DNA from: Asterias rubens | Taxonomy: Eukaryota | NCBI RefSeq assembly: GCF_902459465.1 | Contig: NC_047071.1 | Coordinates: 4,092,001 to 4,156,000, forward strand | Length of the DNA stretch: 64,000 nt | Reading direction: 5' to 3' | In this document: piece by piece, positions 9,638-37,415 of the stretch | Numbering within the stretch: the stretch's first letter is position 1 | Layout of the letters: the number at the start of each line of letters is the position of its first letter | Notes under the pieces: generated by a model | The model's input: only the letters and a program-made list of their open reading frames with translations | Told to the model about the DNA's origin: nothing | Databases searched by the model: none | Position numbers and translations under genes: made by a program

Positions 9638-12600
9638 ATGGCAGCTTCTTGGGTCAGGTTAGGAATTCAACAAGCCTTGAAGTGCTCGGTAAGAAGTTGT
9701 CTATTGATACTGCCTCATCAACTTTTTGGACTTTTTGTTTTTACTTTTACTAGTTAGTGACGACCACCACCAGGTGATTTCAGATTGATCATTCATGCGT
9801 TGAGTGCACATGTTGATGTTCTGTTGTTGTATTATTGTCTTAACTTTGTTTTGTTTTGCTATGCTTACGATTGTTACTGTCAGTATTTCTGTTTATAAGT
9901 CTGTGATCTACATGTAGATCACAACCGAATAATCACGGGGATTACCAATCTGGTTGTAATTGTATTTGGTTTGTTTACTTCATTAGTTTACCTTTAGCCC
10001 GTTTAGAGGTTAGTCTTGAGTCTTTTGGGTATTTAAAGTAATCCCTGGTAGCAGTTCTGTTTCACTGGAACCATGGAGGTTCTACCTCCATGCTGGGACT
10101 AAACTGGGATGGTGCATCAGGTGCCGCCACTGGTCAAATGTGCAGGTGATAGTGAACTTATGTTTAATTAATATGCAAGTGAAAAGCAAAAGAGATTTAC
10201 AATACAGGAGCGTGGAATCAGTGCTAGGTGTTAAAACACCAAGAGCTGGTAGGGCTATTTTGGGGCTATTTTCTGGAATGCTATGACAGCAGAAATAGAA
10301 TTTGATAGTCTTCCCATATAAAAGGGAACTTGGCAAACTCGCACCATGCCACAGGCCCAGGGATAAACACCAAGCTGGCAACAGCCAATCTATCTCATTG
10401 GTGTAAGGTCTATGATGATTTAATATGAATTGCACAAATCAAGAAGTTGTGATTCAGTAACTACTGCTAGTACTAGATGACAATATTTATTCCAGTCTTT
10501 TGAAATCAGCGGTTAGCTGGGGGTTTCGAATCCACAACCATGTGATAGCAAGTCCTGCAGTCTTAACCACTTGACCACAGTGACAGTGATTGTCAATTAC
10601 CATAGTGCCCTGTTTGTTTTTTTGTGGTGCCCTTTGCAAAGCCAGTAAAATTACAATTTTCCTCATATGGTCAAAGCATGCCCCTTATTTATCAGAGGAT
10701 AAAAAATTGCTATGCCCCAAAGTCCAAGGCCTGGGTAAGTTAATCAGGACTTTTCAATTGTGTTCAGAGTTTATTTGTACCAAGGTGCTTTCGTTATTAT
10801 TGTCATTGAATAACAAACTGAATTTTTGGGTTGAACAAAGAATTGACTAGAGTGGGATTCGAACCAACGACCTCCGGATTAACGTGCCGGCGCTCTACCA
10901 ACTGAGCTATCTAGCCCTATATTGGGGGTGTCCCTATTTTGTCAATATTTTTGTTCGGGGTGAATAAAAAACTAACGCAGGCAAAATATTTCTTGTTTTA
11001 TTGCAGAGGGTAACCTTGTCAAGGCCTTACTCTTCAGAAAACTTGTGGAAACTTGGACGAATAAACCACGTGGCAATAGTGGTGCCCAATCTCGGTGAGT
11101 ACTGTTTTTGTGTATGTAAATTTAGTCTGGTTCTTTGTTCTTTCCCTAGAAGATAACTTTTGAGTAGAAGTGTACATGTAGTAGGCCCTATCCAATGAGA
11201 AGTGCTCAAAGGTGGTTTACCATTTATGAGAATCAAATGGCAAAAGAAAATTCCTTGAAATGGTTTTGATCCACCCCTAAATTAATTGACTGACTATTTT
11301 GTCTGTTACAAACACACACTGTAGGACAAAGTGATGTCACAAATGAAGGAAAATTGTTTTATGACTGCTGTCCAAGCTCGGGAACATTTAAAAACAAATC
11401 TTTAAAAACAGAGGACATAGACTGACAAAAACGAGGACCTTAAGAGAACACAATACACACAAAATTTAAGTTTACTTTCCCCTTTGGCAAAGTTTGTTAC
11501 TAATCTCAACATTATTTTGTTTCGTTGTATATTTTTTAGAAGAAGCAACACATCTTTACAAGAATGTGTTCCAAGCAACAGTCAGTGAACCACAAGTGAG
11601 TATCTTAATGGGTGCGTTCGTTTAGCTTCCCTGGGTCTACCCCGCGGTGCTCACTCGGGTGAGCCCTGACAAGAGCTAAACGAACAACCACTCGCCACTC
11701 TCGTAGTGACGTTGTTTACCTGGGGCCAGCCCCCAAGTGACCCACTCCACAAGAAGGGCACTGGGAGCTGACCCGGGTGAGCCCCTGGAATGATGTCCAA
11801 GCTATTCGAACGCACCGAGGCAGACCGGGGATGACCCAGGGAAGCTAAACGAACGCACCCAATGATTGTTAATATTATTATTTATTATTATTTCTTGTAA
11901 TGAAACCCAAGGATGCCTTAAAGGGTGTATGTACTTTTTGTAGGAGAAAAAAACACAATGTCCACAGATTTACACTAAACTTACACAGTTTGAAGATAAT
12001 GATAGTAGAAAGCTTCCCTGAAAATATTACGTACCGAGGTGCTGTAGTTTTTGGGTAATGAGTAAAACAATGTCATGAAAATAGTTTTCTTACCCAGTCA
12101 GTTTCCCTTGTGGTTTATATTGATATCTGAAACAAAAAGTCGCATCCCCTTAAGGTGATCCCCTGGCTGCCGCTTCCCAGGTTGTATCGTAATTTGGGTG
12201 TGATCCCTGGCTACACGGCAGTAAACGGTTGTATGGCTTCTGACTGGCACCCCCGAACAAAGATAATGACAAAATTGGGACACCGCCAACATAGGGCTAG
12301 ATAGCTCAGTTGGTAGAGCGCCGGCACGTTAATCCGGAGGTCGTTGGTTCGAATCCCACTCTAGTCAATTCTTTGTTCAACCCCGAAAATAGTTTTCGTC
12401 TCATGAGACGAAAATTATTTCAAGCATTTACAAACGTATTTTCATGACATTGTTTTACTCATTTCTCAAAAACTACAGCACCTGCAGGTAAGTAATATTT
12501 GAAGAGAACCTTTCCACTATCATTATCTTCAAATCCTGTAACTTTAATGTAAATCTATGGACATTTTGAAAAAGTACCCACATCCTTTAAAGGGTCTGTT

Positions 12601-21600: not shown

Positions 21601-23595
21601 CACTGTATACGTCATATTTCGCCGGGCAAAAAGACGGGTAGTCATGGTAAGAATGAATACACTGCCAAAACACAAAGGTTTTGCCCGGCGGTATGCGCGC
21701 GAATCATGTTATGGTTTTTCGAGTGACGTCATCGTCTATACAGCGCTTAAAACACATCAATGTAAGGGTCAACAAATTTTTTGTTATATATATCTTGCCT
21801 GCTTAAAGCGTTTGAAACCGTTTGTTATGAAATGCATGGTTAGAAAGATATTTGAAAAGAAGAATATAATAATCCACACAAAGGTTTTCCTTCTCTGTCG
21901 CAAAGACACACGGTCGGCCATTTTGTGGAATCAAAATTTTGACTTCATAAAATGGCCGACCGTGTTAGTTCTCGACGTAAAAGGAAAATCGTGCAATTTC
22001 GAGTGATACTTGTGAAGATCATTGTATTCTACTTTTAAAATATCTTTCTAACCATATGCATTTCATAACAAACGGTTTCAAACACTTTTCAAAGACCAAC
22101 TCGACCGATCTAAGGCAACGTGTTCCTTTTAAAGAAAGAAGTTTTTAAGAGATAATGCAACCTTCTTCTGTAGAAATTTCAATTGTTTGTACATGTACAG
22201 TATAGTGTGCTTGAAGAAAACTAGTGGTATGCCTTTAATTACATGAAACGACTTTCCTAGTGAAATATGCATGGCAGCAACATTTAATGACTCTCCAAGG
22301 GTCTGACTCAAGTTGAGTCAACTTCTAATCGTAGACTCAATCAAATTAGCTCAAGTCTTTTTTTAACCTCGCGGAGACGAGGTTCAATTTGCTGGATCAT
22401 TGACCAAAGATTTGCAAGTCAACTTTAATAGTCTGGCCAACAGTGTCCAACTACATGCCTTGAATTTCATCTTTGAGGGGGCAAGGCCATTTTGATGGGG
22501 CACAGGGCGTTTCTAGCATCTGCACTTCCATTGGACACTCTGAAGGGGAAATACCAGGGCAGTTGAGGCCATGGCATTGGTTTAAATTCCGGCCTGCGAC
22601 TTCTTTGTAGAAACATTTGAAAAACACAAGCTCTTGTGTATGGGGTCGGACTCTTTCATTGCAATCCCTATTAATGCCATGTGCATATATATAGCATTTC
22701 GGCTTCACTTCATCAGTCTTTCAGGATTAATAAATGATATCAGTTGAAGGTCATGTTTGAAGATTTCTATTTGTGGAATCGGTAGTGCATGAAGCTGATG
22801 CATATTGCAAGTGTCCCATGGCTATCATAGGTCGCAACCTGTACTGATGAAACCTGTTCCTGCTGTTAATTTTTGAAAGAATAAAATGACATCAAAGGGT
22901 AGATGTTGGATAAAATATGAGATATTTTTGGAGCAATAATCTAAAGGCTGTTAGTGAATGGATGAAATACAGTGCAATTATGAGGAGAAAATTTGCAATT
23001 TTGCCTGTTTGTATTTTAGTTTTATGACAGTGAAATTTGATTTTGGGGTTTGAACAAAGAATTGACTAGAGTGGGATTCGAAACATAGACCTCCGGATTA
23101 ACGTGCCGGCATTAATCCGGAAGTCGTTGGTTCGAGTCCCACTCTAGCCAATTCTTTGTTCAAACCCAAAAGTCATTTCGAAATTTACCCAGTCAGTTTC
23201 CCTTGTGGTTTATATTGATAAAGTGAAATTTGATTAACTTAAAATTGCATGGTCCAAAGGAAACATTAATGACTTTCACAACTGAACAAAATATTTTGAT
23301 TTTTGAGTTTTGAAGAACAGGAACTACAGAGGGGATCATAAGGAATTCCTAATGACCTACAATTCTCCAATCAAATGACAAGGATCTACTTGAATGTAGC
23401 TTGACTTCAAAACCAATCAAATGTGTTTGTTTTATCTCGCAGGTAGATAATATACAAGAGGCGGTGAAAACTTTACTGGACAAAGGTGTGAAAGTGTTGA
23501 ACCCTGTACCAAAAATTGGCGCTCACGGGAAACCGGTTGTGTTTTTGAATCCTAAGGACTGCAGTGGTGTCCTTGTTGAGCTAGAGGAGGCCTAG
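9638..23595 (+). CDS. MCEE: Methylmalonyl-CoA epimerase, mitochondrial, 164 aa
   Basis: Exons 9638-9688, 11007-11094, 11540-11595, 12839-12985 and 23443-23595 (495 nt, GT-AG, in frame). Translation: MAASWVRLGIQQALKCSRVTLSRPYSSENLWKLGRINHVAIVVPNLEEATHLYKNVFQATVSEPQALPEHGVTAVFVELPNSKLELLQPLGDDNPIQGFLKKRPGGGIHHICLEVDNIQEAVKTLLDKGVKVLNPVPKIGAHGKPVVFLNPKDCSGVLVELEEA. It has VOC-fold metal-ligand motifs (NHVAI, ELL, HHICLE, VELE) and an Arg-rich transit peptide. Exon 1 is the least certain. Confidence 0.95.
10516..10584 (-). mobile_element. tRNA-derived SINE head (degenerate)
   Basis: Reverse complement GTCACTGTGGTCAAGTGGTTAAG...GTGGATTCGAAACCC, with A-box-like and B-box-like motifs. Confidence 0.45.
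10820..10960 (-). mobile_element. tRNA-like-bearing retroposon, copy A
   Basis: Contains the tRNA-like 73-mer plus flanks shared with copy B. 13-bp TSD TGAATAACAAACT (10807-10819) / TGAATAAAAAACT (10961-10973). Confidence 0.75.
10844..10916 (-). tRNA. tRNA-Asn(GTT)-like sequence, probably a repeat-borne pseudo-tRNA
   Basis: Identical to 12295-12367; cloverleaf with A and B boxes. Confidence 0.5.
11610..11860. mobile_element. MITE with 28-bp TIRs and AAT TSD (PIF/Harbinger-like)
   Basis: AAT|GGGTGCGTTCGTTTAGCTTCCCTGGGTC ... GACCCAGGGAAGCTAAACGAACGCACCC|AAT, starting 14 nt after the MCEE exon-3 donor. Confidence 0.85.
12090..12384 (+). mobile_element. tRNA-like-bearing retroposon, copy B (295 nt)
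   Basis: Flanked by a perfect 13-bp TSD GAAAATAGTTTTC (12077-12089 and 12385-12397). The tRNA-like part is near the 3' end. Confidence 0.8.
12295..12367 (+). tRNA. tRNA-Asn(GTT)-like sequence, probably a repeat-borne pseudo-tRNA
   Basis: GGCTAGA/TCTAGTC acceptor stem, GCTC/GAGC D stem, CCGGC-ACGTTAA-TCCGG anticodon arm (C31-T39 mismatch, C33 instead of U33), GTTGG-TTCGAAT-CCCAC T arm (one mismatch). Confidence 0.5.
16140..16400 (+). mobile_element. SINE 3' body with (TTA)n tail
   Basis: AAGAACCTAGTACACTTATTGCCAAGAAAAGGGGTT continues the motif that ends the SINE at 19136-19328. Ends GAGCGCTT...ATATAAGAACTGCATATTATTATTTATTATT. Confidence 0.5.
16930..17280. repeat. Degenerate ~85-107 bp tandem repeat, ~3.5 copies
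   Basis: Recurrent TCATTCAA(G/A)ACCACAGTGGATGA...AGTTGGAGGGTT(G/A)ACTGTGTACT at ~16931, 17016, 17123 and 17225. Confidence 0.6.
17545..18040 (+). mobile_element. 5'-truncated L2/CR1-clade LINE 3' end (frameshifted ORF2 C-terminus)
   Basis: LPIAQISKLQHIQNSAARLVTR..HITLVLRSLHWLLVSKRIEFKLLLLTYKSLH..APHYL / RTKSYGHRSFSYSSPSLWNNLPHNIR..KHLLKTYLF*, then GCGCTATACAAGTG and a (TTA)n tail. Confidence 0.88.
18296..18456. mobile_element. Kolobok MITE family 1, truncated
   Basis: Right third of the consensus, ending GTGTCCAGTGCCTTTA. Confidence 0.65.
19136..19328 (+). mobile_element. tRNA-derived SINE
   Basis: A box TGGCCGAGCGG (19146-19156), B box GGTTCGAATCC (19205-19215), followed by GTGTCC..AGCAAGACACTTAACC..GGGACGTAAAGCCGTTGGTCCC, which resembles conserved SINE central domains. 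Confidence 0.75.
21800..22130. mobile_element. Kolobok-type fold-back MITE, family 3
   Basis: Inverted arms TTTGAAACCGTTTGTTATGAAATGCATGGTTAGAAAGATA / TATCTTTCTAACCATATGCATTTCATAACAAACGGTTTCAAA; ends AAGGCAACGTGTTCCT-TTTAA. The same right end occurs at ~5860-5935. Confidence 0.6.
23043..23221. mobile_element. tRNA-like-bearing retroposon, copy C (5' inversion, permuted)
   Basis: Perfect 14-bp TSD AGTGAAATTTGATT (23029-23042 and 23222-23235). Contains two inverted tRNA 3' halves followed by the segment that begins copy B. Confidence 0.8.
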
Positions 23596-32317: not shown

Positions 32318-35300
32318 TTAACCACATTACATCACATCGAAGTGAAATTCTCATAAAGGTTGTTCTTACTATCGAAAGTTGCATTTCATGACTATTTACT
32401 ATAACTTTCAAAAATAGGAAATCGTGTTAAAAAAAGGCTGAAACACATGTGCTGCCCGGTAGGCCTACTCGTATTTGCTCCACGTCCATCAGCAATTTGT
32501 GAACAATTCTCCATGTTGAAAGTTTTTGTATGTTTTTGGTTTTTGAAACGGAATCATCTGTCAACATTCGTTCAGAGAAAACATTTCAATAATATACAGT
32601 GTATTCAGCTGGATCTTTCACATATTACTTTACTTTAATTTCATATATTACTTTACTGTATATTTTTATGTAATTTGCCACAGAAACCAGCATTACGCTG
32701 ACACAAAACCAAGCGATGGCTGGCTACCTCGTGGTGATAATACAGTATATCCACATTCACGCTTACATTAGAATATCAAGGCTCATTTCACGTCTCGCAG
32801 CGAGATTTCAAAGTTGTCGATGGCAGTTGTTGTTGATGGCGAGTTGAATCTCGTTGTTTTTGACGTCCGTAACGGAAGTTTCAACGATGTAGACGGCAAA
32901 GTACATTTATCTTTGGTAACCTAGCTTTATGATGCAATATGGCTACTCATACAGCTAGATAACCAAAGAGAATTGCATCACCAAGATGGTCGACACGTGG
33001 TACGATGGGGCGTGTCTACTGATGCACTCCCGGTGAAAGCAAGGTGTCTGGAGACGGTTGCACTCTGTTGTTAGTTGTTCCTCTGCTGATGACGGTTGTT
33101 CCTTAAACTTTAAAAACTGTCACTTTACTGTTTCGCAAAGAGCCATCTTTATATCATCATTTATTTAAAATACCCCTATCTATATCTTTTTAGAAAATAG
33201 AAGTATCATCTGTTGCAAAGTACTAACCAACTACAAGGACCTATGGTAATGCACCAAATAGTTAATCTATAGCAGTCTTCCTCGAAGGCTTCATAGTATT
33301 TGGACTATCAAAGTATTTTATTGAATAGCAGCTGAAAACGGAAATACACTCGGTAAACTCTACAAAGTTTAAATTATGTTCGACATTCTGTAGATCTCCC
33401 ATGCGGTATTGATGAATTTGCTATAACCTTTAAGGCCGTCATGCAAGCAGAGCACACATACCACGTCATGACCCAAGAACATCTGTATAATAACTGCGTC
33501 CAAATGGATGCCACAGTTCAATCTGACTGGACAACACTTCACATAATAATGTTCTCTAGATACAGTGAAATGGTATTTGCTGTTAACCTATAGTGAGAAG
33601 ACTCTTCTTTTTTTCATGAGAAAAATGTTTACGTTTTAAATCATGTTTGGTTTTGAATCTTTACGCGCCATTTTGTTTGCCAACTTCAACCCTGAAACTT
33701 ATGCCATGCGTGGTACGTGTCTTGACATTATTATAACTGAATAAACACAAAGTGTTGATAGTGTTTACTGATATTTTATCCTGCCAAAATGGATATTCCT
33801 CATTGTTTAAAAAAAAAAATTTGTTCAAACATCCAGTTTCCCCATCCACAAAAATTGTGAGAATTCCACTGAACTAGGCAGCATGCGTTCCAGTGAAACA
33901 ATCGAAAAACCGTAAGGGATTTTTGTCCAAGTCCCATGTATACTGTCATTCAATTTCAGCACAGCAGTCGAAATAACCAGCAGTGAACAGGGGGCATTTG
34001 AATTTTATTTTCTTCATCTATTTAGACAGTGACATTTCACAAGAGAATTGACACTGGTATAAATGTAGTAATCAGTAAGCGTCCCTACAATTAAAATAGA
34101 AAATCTACCAGATTTGTTTTAATGTTTTGGTGATTAACAATCCTACATGATCATCTTTAACCGACTATCCCAGCAATATGCATGAACATCTCTGTTAATT
34201 CACGCGGTAAAATTAACTGAAGTAATAATGGGTGCACGGACGCCTGCGTTTGGGTCCACACTACAGGGCAGAGGGCCATAGGGACGTTTGTGGTTTTTCC
34301 ATCCGGAAATCAGGCGAACCAAAAAACCCTGCAAAGAATCTGTATTGATGTGCTTGGTAAGACCACGGAGGAAGACAATTAACCACAGTTAGTTAACTTC
34401 TTGTTGAGGTATACCACAATCACACCTTGACGTCACAATGTTGTGTCGGCCATTTTGTAAATAGGTAGTACTGACTTCACACACTTTTCAACGGGAAGAC
34501 TGCAGAGAAGCTAATAAACCAATAGGTTTTTTGCAAGCTGCAAAAATACAATCGTGAAGTTCAACTTGACTCCATTATCATGATCTTTTCTAAAAGACCG
34601 AGTGGTGAGTCGTTGCTGACAAAGTCTGATACTAGGATCCAGTGTTAGGAGGTATACTTTGAAAATACAGCACTCTCTGTGCATCTTTTGGCTACTTACT
34701 GTAGATACACACATGGTGCTACCGAAAATCAATAGTATTGACACCTCACCATGCAATGCCTCAACTCATAGTTACTACTGTAGTTATAGATTTCAATGGA
34801 CAGTGTTCTCAGTGTTAGAGAAGTAGATCCAAAAGAAATGTATGTATGTCTGACGATAATTTAAGAATAAGATTTTTTTAATGTTCACACTGCAGACAAA
34901 AAAGGGTCAAACTTCATAGACAATGATTCAGATAAAAGTCTCATTTCTTCACCCCTGATACTAAAGACATTGTATCGATTCGTAAACGTCAACACTCGTT
35001 CCAGCAACAAACCAAGATGGTTTGTTTCCATGGACTCTGTCCCAATACGACCCAGACCCAAAGGAATCAACCAATTGAGTCCAATTTACGGTCTTTCCTG
35101 TCCGAGGAGGTCATGTTTCGGCTAAGCGGCCATTGTACGTGTGGACAAGTCAGAGTTGAAAGGCTGGCTCTCTTAAAGGGTTTTGATACCCTTTGTAGAT
35201 CAAGTTACTTGCAATGGCATGAATTCATCTTAAATGTGAATGAAGATGTTTGTAGATAGATGTACAGCAATACAAATTACCAGCTTCATTAGTCGTCAAG

Positions 35301-36485: not shown

Positions 36486-37279
36486 TTAACGACAATGTTG
36501 TTCGTTATTGGACACTAAGTAGAAACAGGGAGTCAAATATAGCGAGAAAACATTTCTGATGCTAGACTAGAAGTTGAATTTGTTTTTCGTAAAAATCCGT
36601 TAATTTCAACAGCGGAGATTGCCGGAATTTCAACAGCGGAGATTGCCGCAAAATTCACAAATCAAAATCTTTCTAGATGATATCCTAATTTTGATCACAG
36701 CAAATCAAAATAAATTCATGCATTGTATATGGATACATTGATATCCCCGTTTAATTTGGGTTTAACTAAAAAAGGGACAACTTCGTTCAAAGACGTAAGC
36801 TTATGCAAATATGTAATTTCATTAAATTCTCAAAGAAAAAGTTTACATTCTTGAAAACGTGAACTTGAAATGAGTCTACCAATTCTGCATAAATAATGCT
36901 TGCTACACGAAAAACCCTTCATGATGCTAACAAGAATCAGGGTTATATTTATAGACACTGGTATGCCATGCCAAATCACGTGCTGGGCGATGAATGCCAT
37001 AAACATTTCACAGTAAGTAGTGTTTCAGTTCGAGAAGTTGACCTCAGTAAAATAGAGGTCAAATTAAAATGGTTTCCGGTCAATTCATAAACTGCCCGGG
37101 GAATAGATAAAGGGTTCTGTGTACAACCAAAAGTAGCAAACTATAATTTCAGATGTTTAGCATATAGGCCTATATATATCTAAATGACAGCTTCCTCTTT
37201 GAGTTTTGGTGAACAATAGCCAAAATAAATTGGCAGAATACAGACATTATTTCAGGAGAATCACTTTCCTAGTATATAG

Positions 37280-37334
37280 CCTTCGAGAAAGACTCTGCTA
37301 GGGTCGAAACGTCAGGCCATTAACTATTTTTTGC
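37280..37334 (+). ncRNA. Penelope-type hammerhead-like motif inserted alone
   Basis: Stem I GCCT/AGGC, core TCGAGAAA, stem II GACTCT/AGGGTC, GAAAC-GTC. 16-bp TSD CTTTCCT(A/T)GTATATAG. Confidence 0.65.
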
Positions 37335-37415
37335 CTTTCCTTGTATATAGTGACACGGCCTAGTTTGCGTACAAGTCCGCGAGTGGAAACGAGTTGTAGT
37401 TTCTGGTTGACTTAA

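Follow-up and report, generated by a model that had tools for sequence, protein, structure and literature searches.

A 312-nt tandem tRNA-like family in Asterias rubens and the probable Penelope-type origin of a head-to-head insertion

How does a single insertion come to carry two 3′ halves of the same tRNA-like sequence, one antisense and one sense, followed by what looks like the beginning of the element from which they derive? Such an insertion, copy C, lies in an intron of MCEE, within a 64,000-nucleotide stretch of the Asterias rubens genome (NC_047071.1, positions 4,092,001 to 4,156,000; hereafter the window) that also holds copies A and B of the same family. A sequence-only reading of the window had described copy C as circularly permuted and 5′-inverted relative to copy B and had derived from it a repeating or circular template of ~312 nt, with twin priming or Penelope-like elements as models for the inversion. 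We consider it highly probable that copy C records one retrotransposition event of a 312-nt tandem family, effected by Penelope-like machinery through priming at two sites on a repeating template.

Anatomy of copy C and of the 312-nt unit

The elements that the earlier reading had described in copy C were all found where it had placed them. Positions below are those of the window; S1 and S2 are the two 3′ sites of the family, defined in a later section.

10828 to 10960, minus strand: copy A, 5′-truncated, unit 162-294, 3′ end at S1
12090 to 12384, plus strand: copy B, 295 of 312 unit positions (unit 1-295), 3′ end at S1
23029 to 23042, no strand: left target-site duplication, AGTGAAATTTGATT
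23043 to 23110, minus strand: antisense arm, running from unit ~303 back to 231
23105 to 23110, no strand: GCCGGC palindrome, 6 nt, from the anticodon stem of the tRNA-like sequence, at the junction of the arms
23111 to 23167, plus strand: first part of the sense arm, tRNA-like 3′ half (to 23150), then 17 nt ending at S1
23168 to 23220, plus strand: “tail” of the sense arm, linker and first 36 nt of the next unit, ending at S2
23221, plus strand: single extra A that separates the S2 end from the right duplication, untemplated or variant
23222 to 23235, no strand: right target-site duplication, AGTGAAATTTGATT

The family unit is 312 nt long and carries its tRNA-like sequence internally, at unit 206-278, with A and B boxes intact; TTTT is absent from its sense strand. 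Both ARAGORN and Rfam (56 bits) call the module a tRNA, and it presumably serves as a Pol III promoter. A functional tRNA-Asn gene was considered and rejected: position 33 is C in place of U33, pairs 31-39 and 51-63 are mismatched, there are ~1650 near-identical copies, and copy C holds 3′ halves only. A 35-mer of the unit occurs 1649 times in the genome, and the family is young, abundant and non-coding, existing as head-to-tail multimers. Copy B has a complete tRNA-like sequence (12295-12367) and is flanked by a 13-bp duplication (GAAAATAGTTTTC, 12077-89 and 12385-97); copy A has its tRNA-like sequence at 10844-10916 and lacks a clear target-site duplication.

Copy C is bounded by perfect 14-bp duplications, and their sequence occurs exactly twice in the 64-kb window (0.01 occurrences expected by chance), bearing out the earlier claim. 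The left duplication closes with TGATT, 5 nt that are complementary to AATCA of the element (unit ~301-305), an overlap that is a microhomology at the priming site. The antisense arm has its 3′ end at S1 and is made up of 25 nt from beyond the tRNA and the tRNA-like 3′ half (23063-23110), which keeps the B box and has no A box. Matches to the tRNA-like 3′ half fall at 23063-23084 on the minus strand and at 23129-23150 on the plus strand, the antisense-to-sense join that had been proposed. The arms meet at GTGCCGGCAT, which includes GCCGGC; relative to the family sequence, the sense arm lacks CG after GCCGGCA or, alternatively, starts at TTAATCC with one filler A. Beyond the sense tRNA half come the 17 nt that end at S1 (ATTCTTTGTTCAAACCC, 23151-67), the 17-nt linker (AAAAGTCATTTCGAAAT, 23168-84, unit 296-312) and a segment beginning TTACCC (TTACCCAGTCAG...TTGATA, 23185-23220) that repeats without change the 36 nt with which copy B opens at 12090.

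The hairpin that had been predicted is present, but its arms are somewhat longer than the ~55 bp first given: 23038-23101 and 23112-23175 are inverted over 64 nt, 88% complementary, with a 10-nt spacer. Folded as RNA, the insert reaches −90.3 kcal/mol (z = −12.3), and its tail region shows no significant secondary structure (fold z = +0.8). The two arms differ at 8 of 64 positions, a divergence that we attribute to age because each arm has changes of its own and the subfamily variant CAAACCC is common to both; an origin of the arms from two different templates is possible. Since it has no A box, copy C is unable to transcribe itself. It is an inert, 5′-truncated, dead-on-arrival insertion, an ordinary member of a large family, and its sole likely activity is as a 64-bp hairpin within the MCEE intron.

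The repeating template and the case for a circle

Copy C itself crosses one unit boundary, and the tail-linker-head junction at that boundary is a genome-wide feature: a search with up to 3 mismatches returned 160 occurrences, against 0 for a reversed-pattern control. The possibility that the junction is unique to this locus thus fails, both on these matches and on the head-to-tail arrays with an exact 312-nt period, which are common and reach ~10.7 identical units. Multi-unit insertions also lie inside single duplications, one of 1794 nt within a 12-bp duplication and another of 859 + 619 nt within a 14-bp duplication. The 312-nt repeating template is real, and with it the proposal that the 3′ end of copy B is joined to its own 5′ end through a 17-nt linker.

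The arrays are internally homogeneous. Nine units of array C13 contain 0 variable columns; an AA insertion is present in 4 of 5 units of array L003, T301C in 3 of 3 units of L051, and five private variants in 2 of 2 units of L040. Identity of the units, together with array-private variants common to them, implies that each array descends from one reiterated unit. What form this unit took could be answered by a retrozyme-like RNA, closed covalently into a 312-nt circle and reverse-transcribed in rolling-circle fashion, with the enzyme and the insertion scars unchanged. The homogeneity of these four arrays would suit a circle, as would a period of precisely 312 nt everywhere; circles are formed by animal retrozymes of similar size (PMC7229834), and a self-closing contig of 343 nt (312 + 31) occurs in a marine metatranscriptome. 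A closed de Bruijn contig is, however, equally expected from genomic arrays, as are the RNA reads that span the unit and its tandem junction, and homogeneous arrays could also stem from homogeneous source arrays or from unequal crossing-over. Hammerhead-less Penelope clades and non-autonomous derivatives make head-to-tail multimers as well (PMC8557442).

The unit has no self-cleaving ribozyme: Rfam run on three tandem units (E up to 10) returned the tRNA only, a ribozyme search of copies A and B and of the whole window found none in the unit, and a CUGANGA core is absent from both of its strands, although the same scan detects one in a resident Penelope 3′ UTR. Cuts by RNase P and RNase Z at the tRNA ends would be expected to yield a 239-nt product without the tRNA, not 312 nt. 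RNA-seq over a full copy gave no evidence of dedicated expression: no discrete RNA ends were seen, reads were equally frequent in the two orientations, and depth was low relative to the number of genomic copies, a pattern that fits either template topology. We hold a circular template to be unlikely, and copy C can be explained without one. A bolder proposal, that the unit replicates via a ribozyme-free circular or single-unit RNA copied repeatedly by a Penelope RT, the tRNA-like module replacing the hammerhead as Pol III promoter and as a handle for host tRNA processing and ligation, strikes us as quite unlikely. If true, it would amount to a new route to retrozyme-like circles, and the unit would be a compact, naturally occurring substrate for Penelope priming at two sites and on two strands.

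Two 3′ sites, their pairing and the priming mechanism

Endpoints were mapped for 61 insertions, picked partly by a 35-mer in the tRNA 3′ half and so a sample short of a full census. The expectation that endpoints would not cluster at fixed positions holds for the 5′ ends, which scatter around the unit, and fails for the 3′ ends, which fall at two fixed sites ~48 nt apart and are crisp in sequence: S1 (...TTCAACCCC[A]n; unit 293-306) and S2 (...TTGATA; unit 31-39). Of the insertions with a single orientation, 20 have their 3′ end at S1 and 10 at S2, and the 8 that end elsewhere are old, degraded copies. RNA-seq depth over a copy drops ~4-fold just past S1. Copy C appears permuted simply because its sense arm began at the downstream site S2 and copy B at S1. 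Head-to-head insertions make up 23 of the 61 (38%) and tail-to-tail ones 0, and where both outer ends of a head-to-head insertion could be classified, S1 was paired with S2 in 15 of 16 cases, copy C included (binomial p = 5e-5). This near-obligatory pairing suggests that S1 and S2 are used as a coordinated pair.

Inner breakpoints have a hot spot: 12 of 46 lie within unit 221-245, where 3.7 would be expected (p = 2e-4), and a perfect palindromic GCCGGC junction recurs at 8 loci besides copy C. Twelve of the 14 other head-to-head S1+S2 composites are flanked by one 10-18-bp direct repeat, the remaining 2 by a 7-bp match only. Target sites are AT-rich and the duplications variable, with 26 of them spanning 9-18 bp at 80% AT against a 60% AT background. 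AAT directly follows 5 of 15 S2 ends, which implies a primer ending in ...ATT, and no poly(A) or microsatellite tail is found at the 3′ ends of the mapped insertions.

Copy C is a single event, since one perfect 14-bp duplication encloses the whole composite and the same architecture is found in 14 others. A chance fusion of two insertions, or a local rearrangement such as a replication-error palindrome, might be read from the exact junction string of copy C, which, CG gap included, occurs nowhere else in the genome; but both arms lie inside one duplication with no internal duplication, the architecture recurs at ~15 independent sites with different duplications, and the GCCGGC junction is shared with 8 loci, all of which makes this explanation exceedingly improbable.

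An ordinary tRNA-derived SINE moved by a LINE, with copy C as an L1-style twin-priming inversion and the arrays as later satellite-like expansions, would account for the A and B boxes of the module, and 5′ truncation with 9-18-bp duplications suits target-primed reverse transcription generally; one insertion (L053) even places an inverted segment adjacent to a sense segment, as in classical twin priming. Against this stand an internal module (206-278) in place of a fixed 5′ head, the missing poly(A) or microsatellite tail, multi-unit arrays inside single duplications and an inversion frequency of 38%. L1-type twin priming, one of the models first offered for the inversion, has to be given up for two further reasons: the arms of copy C duplicate the same unit coordinates, not adjacent ones, and the two discrete 3′ ends ~48 nt apart are paired in 15 of 16 inverted insertions. 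We regard a SINE/LINE origin as very improbable.

The other model, a Penelope-like one, is upheld by the tandems, the head-to-head 5′-truncated copies, the two 3′ ends with a one-sided tail and the AT-rich, variable duplications. Penelope enzyme has been reported to cleave and extend both strands, to nick at ATT and to start at two adjacent internal sites, which define the tail (PMC11167929), and Penelope tandem and inverted insertions with a tail at one end are on record, also in hammerhead-less clades, as are non-autonomous head-to-tail multimers of Penelope-like elements (PMC8557442). We posit that a Penelope-like RT/GIY-YIG endonuclease complex would place nicks 14 bp apart in the two strands of an AT-rich target, and that each 3′-OH set free would serve as primer for reverse transcription from one of two fixed sites within the repeating template RNA. 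One strand would start at S2 (...TTGATA) and be copied for 109 nt, back via the tail and the segment after the tRNA into the 3′ half of the tRNA-like sequence; the second strand would start at S1 (...CAAACCCCAA, with 5 nt of microhomology) and be copied for 68-73 nt to the same place. Both cDNAs would halt in the anticodon stem and be linked at the self-complementary GCCGGC or directly beside it, giving a head-to-head 5′-truncated pair with a tail on one side only. Penelope as the agent, and the assignment of each strand to its site, are our reading of these scars. The S1 arm of copy C starts with 5 nt of microhomology, which counts against a Penelope origin, as the Penelope start site in vitro was reported to be non-homologous to the nicked DNA.

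The genome that hosts the family also contains an autonomous Penelope-like element, with RT and GIY-YIG, that has been active recently. GIY-YIG matches number at least 149, and many of them sit in intact open frames of 921 or 931 aa; the RT sequence in L013 is canonical for Penelope, RT motifs included, and its homologues carry RVT_1 and GIY-YIG; and resident copies share 94-98% identity with an A. amurensis query across the end of its ORF and its 3′ UTR, with the exception of two short fragments at 73-83%. In the resident Penelope family, too, the ends fall at two sites, here separated by 23-33 nt. The ~48-nt tail of the 312-nt family departs from this figure and from the 30-40 bp of the literature, an observation that counts against the Penelope reading. 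So does the comparison of the unit with the 3′ UTR and tail of one Penelope family (an Asterias amurensis copy and an ENA contig), which gave no significant similarity. Because no sequence link to a resident Penelope ORF was found, the Penelope partner of the family is unproven. A search for a partner by proximity was set aside: two family copies lie a few kb from a GIY-YIG match (by eye), which is about chance level. A Penelope RT, from the element whose 3′ UTR and tail were compared with the unit, occurs ~200 nt beyond the C13 array, and since the intervening 200 nt are unrelated repeat sequence, the two do not form a chimera.

Implications and relation to known systems

If Penelope-type integration is indeed at work, copy C would be a compact specimen of it, with arms, start sites, tail and joining microhomology all within 179 nt, and the near-obligatory pairing of S1 and S2 would lend in vivo support to the two-strand, two-adjacent-site extension seen in vitro. 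The family also indicates that a retrozyme-like tandem retroposon can manage without a hammerhead, with a tRNA-like Pol III module instead. Array-private variants present in every unit make the origin of Penelope tandems, a question of long standing, testable on a 312-nt RNA, with rolling-circle copying and template re-initiation as the alternatives.

Among known systems, Penelope-like elements and their non-autonomous derivatives (e.g., the Chlamys-dependent MRC1, and the pLTR/tail arrangement) share with the family the head-to-tail partial or multiple tandems, the adjacent inverted 5′-truncated copy, strong 5′ truncation, two alternative 3′ ends with a one-sided tail, and AT-rich targets with variable duplications in which both target strands apparently act as primers; unlike them, the family has a non-coding unit of only 312 nt with a tRNA-like Pol III-type module and a tail of ~48 nt as opposed to 30-40 bp, and unlike the resident canonical Penelope it has no hammerhead core. 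Metazoan non-LTR retrozymes, which carry type I hammerheads in tandem repeats of 150-450 bp and are expressed as circRNAs (PMC7229834; bioRxiv 10.64898/2026.07.22.740005), resemble it in unit size, low GC content, dispersal as dimers to long multimers, longer duplications, a proposed dependence on Penelope enzyme and a within-array homogeneity compatible with rolling-circle copying, yet their defining hammerhead is absent here and a tRNA-like sequence occupies the unit instead. With tRNA-derived SINEs the family has in common an A/B-box tRNA-like sequence, the lack of a sense-strand Pol III terminator and non-autonomous retroposition, but it has neither a fixed 5′ head nor a LINE-type or A-tail, and it has two 3′ ends and generates tandem and inverted products. 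Finally, as in L1 twin-priming inversions, two cDNAs appear to be primed, one from each target strand, and to be linked through microhomology inside one duplication, whereas the overlap of the copy C arms in template coordinates, the paired use of two fixed internal start sites and an inversion frequency of 38% set the family apart from L1.

Copy C and the 312-nt unit

Copy C is, as the sequence-only reading had it, bounded by a perfect 14-bp duplication: AGTGAAATTTGATT occurs exactly twice in the 64-kb window (23029-42 and 23222-35; 0.01 expected by chance), and the two copies enclose one tRNA-like 3' half per strand. The hairpin that these halves were said to form has 64-nt arms and a predicted RNA fold of -90.3 kcal/mol (z = -12.3); arm complementarity is just 88% because each arm carries three private changes relative to the family sequence and the junction contains a 2-nt CG gap. 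Counting this gap, the junction string is unique in the genome, and a perfect palindromic GCCGGC junction is found at eight loci besides copy C. The sense arm runs from 17 nt of post-tRNA sequence through a 17-nt "linker" into 36 nt that match the beginning of copy B exactly, again as described. Both arms lack an A box, so copy C would be dead on arrival. Its variants CAAACCC, AAAAGTC, and TTCGAAAT each occur in other family copies, and copy C itself belongs to an older subfamily. The flanking exons read as methylmalonyl-CoA epimerase-like.

Family insertions in the window and 3'-end sites of the family
23029-23235: copy C, head-to-head insertion
23105-10: meeting point of the copy C arms, palindrome GCCGGC, in the anticodon stem of the tRNA-like sequence
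12090-12384: copy B, 13-bp duplication GAAAATAGTTTTC
Unit 293-306: site S1, ...TTGTTCAACCCC, ending within the following A-run
Unit 31-39: site S2, ...GGTTTATATTGATA

Searches of the 417.6-Mb assembly returned more than 3600 first-look candidates for copy B, many of them spaced exactly 312 nt apart, and 160 matches to the tail-linker-head string at up to three mismatches (reversed control, 0); the unit is therefore 312 nt long, which bears out the proposed ~312-nt repeating template and shows that the junction is not confined to copy C. Copy B spans 295 of the 312 nt, the "linker" being the 17 nt missing from it. A 35-mer taken from the tRNA-like 3' half has 1649 matches. On a ruler made of one natural unit from an array on contig C13 (position 1 = TTACCC), both ARAGORN and Rfam classify unit 206-278 as tRNA. 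Its A and B boxes are consensus-like, and the segment is a tRNA-derived module; a working tRNA-Asn gene was rejected on C33 and mismatches at two stem pairs. TTTT is absent from the sense strand of the unit (antisense T-runs lie at four places), a composition that would fit Pol III read-through across several units. Diverged copies, ~78% identical, are present in the sister species, Asterias amurensis CP134966.1 (L073 17236-17334 and 20209-20422), so the family is older than the young burst.

Copy B interrupts the central hairpin of a MITE-like, palindromic element whose flanks (12040-12089 and 12398-12490) are mutually inverted repeats. A GC-rich stretch of ~250 bp at 11610-11862, with terminal inverted repeats of ~35 nt (GGGTGCGTTCGTTTAGCTTCCCTGGG... 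/ ...CCCAGGGAAGCTAAACGAACGCACCC), most likely represents a MITE within the same intron. The window also holds a mir-9/mir-79 microRNA precursor at 32901-32978 (-), which scores 72.3 bits, above the Rfam gathering threshold.

Endpoints of family insertions

We mapped 61 independent insertions, drawn from the window, from loci found by the copy B and junction searches, and from 34 loci around exact 35-mer matches. The scatter of endpoints that a circular template would lead one to expect was found at the 5' ends, which spread around the whole unit, but not at the 3' ends, which fall into two clusters ~48 nt apart, S1 and S2. Single-orientation copies end at S1 (20), S2 (10), or other positions (8, old and degraded), and RNA-seq depth along a full copy drops ~4-fold right after S1, as expected if S1 ends most copies. 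Head-to-head insertions, with 3' ends outward, account for 23 of the 61, and tail-to-tail insertions for none. Where both outer ends could be classified, 15 of 16 head-to-head insertions pair S1 with S2 (chance ~44%, p = 5e-5); copy C, with outer ends at 303 and 36, is such a pair. Inner breakpoints of inverted insertions lie at unit 221-245, the anticodon stem-loop, in 12 of 46 cases (3.7 expected, p = 2e-4). A direct repeat flanks 26 insertions, with lengths of 9-18 bp and a median of 13 bp; these duplications are 80% AT, compared with 60% in surrounding DNA. AAT follows the S2 end in 5 of 15, corresponding to a primer ending in ATT.

One head-to-head insertion occurs three times on contig C2 (L066, L067, and L072, at 8.787, 8.823, and 11.889 Mb) with a shared 10-bp duplication, ATACAAAAAG; it therefore spread by later duplication or within a larger repeat and was counted once. 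Another family copy (L068 2188-2225, 2623-2681) lies within a repeat that is far more abundant than the family and reaches RNA-seq depths in the thousands; many reads carry this repeat in uninterrupted form.

Template topology

The units of any one array are identical and have array-private variants in common.

Arrays and their shared features
C13 array: nine identical units
L003 array: 2-nt insertion in 4/5 units
L051 array: T301C in 3/3 units
L040 array: five private variants in both units

Each array thus derives from one reiterated unit, which could reflect (i) rolling-circle copying, (ii) repeated re-initiation on one RNA, (iii) copying of a homogeneous source array, or (iv) unequal crossing-over. 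Homogeneity is compatible with the first route, yet we regard a circular RNA template as improbable: neither Rfam nor a hammerhead core-motif scan found a ribozyme in the unit, and the tandem junction seen in RNA reads and a 343-nt (312 + 31) self-closing contig in a marine metatranscriptome would equally be produced by genomic arrays. No discrete RNA ends were seen in the RNA reads, whose depth per genomic copy is low.

Probable Penelope-type insertion

Penelope-like elements (PLEs) are resident in the genome, with at least 149 GIY-YIG matches, many within intact 921- or 931-aa open frames with identical scores. Locus L013 encodes a canonical Penelope reverse transcriptase (KRADKG..., RPIVS, FIDD), whose homologs in echinoderms and mollusks combine RVT_1 and GIY-YIG; a Penelope fragment from the assembly is 99% identical to an A. 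amurensis protein. Queried with the A. amurensis copy (L073), resident copies show 94-98% identity across the ORF end and the 3' UTR, which has a minimal hammerhead core (CTGAAGA...GAAA), and end at query 869-880 in most cases and 892-905 in five, giving a tail of 23-33 nt. This young family is spread genome-wide and includes partial tandems (e.g., C116:14375-15286). At L013 2309-3294 (G000:C13:11055314 onward), a 5'-truncated PLE with a 641-aa open frame shares the orientation of the 10.7-unit array on C13; ~200 nt of an unrelated repeat separate this array from the downstream Penelope reverse transcriptase. In the window, a 55-nt insert (37260-37350; duplication CCTTTCCTAGTATATAG / CCTTTCCTTGTATATAG) looks, on inspection by eye, like the final ~50 nt of the resident Penelope 3' UTR (GGTCGAAAC..AGGCCAT.. 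versus L073 11860-11907). Our reading is a Penelope insertion with extreme 5' truncation and a degenerate hammerhead core; Rfam calls no hammerhead in it. Comparison of the 312-nt unit with the 3' UTR and tail of this Penelope family revealed no significant similarity, and we therefore infer a Penelope partner from the insertion scars.

Published accounts of PLE insertions list partial tandems, a neighboring 5'-truncated copy in inverted orientation, and a 30-40-bp tail often at one end only; this extends to clades that lack hammerheads and to non-autonomous derivatives inserting as head-to-tail multimers (PMC8557442). With a purified Penelope enzyme, both target strands are cleaved and extended, ATT is the preferred nick site, and reverse transcription begins at two neighboring internal positions, the distance between them being the tail (PMC11167929). 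The copy C sense arm probably started at the downstream site S2 and copy B at S1; this difference would make copy C seem circularly permuted relative to copy B, an appearance that does not call for a circular template. Of the inversion mechanism proposed earlier, the Penelope-type features were reproduced, whereas classical L1 twin priming was rejected: its arms copy adjacent coordinates, but both copy C arms copy the same ones (231/240-303), and S1-S2 pairing is nearly obligatory. Each of these published features is reproduced by the 312-nt family, which we interpret as a retrozyme-like tandem retroposon of Penelope type that has a tRNA-like module and lacks a hammerhead.
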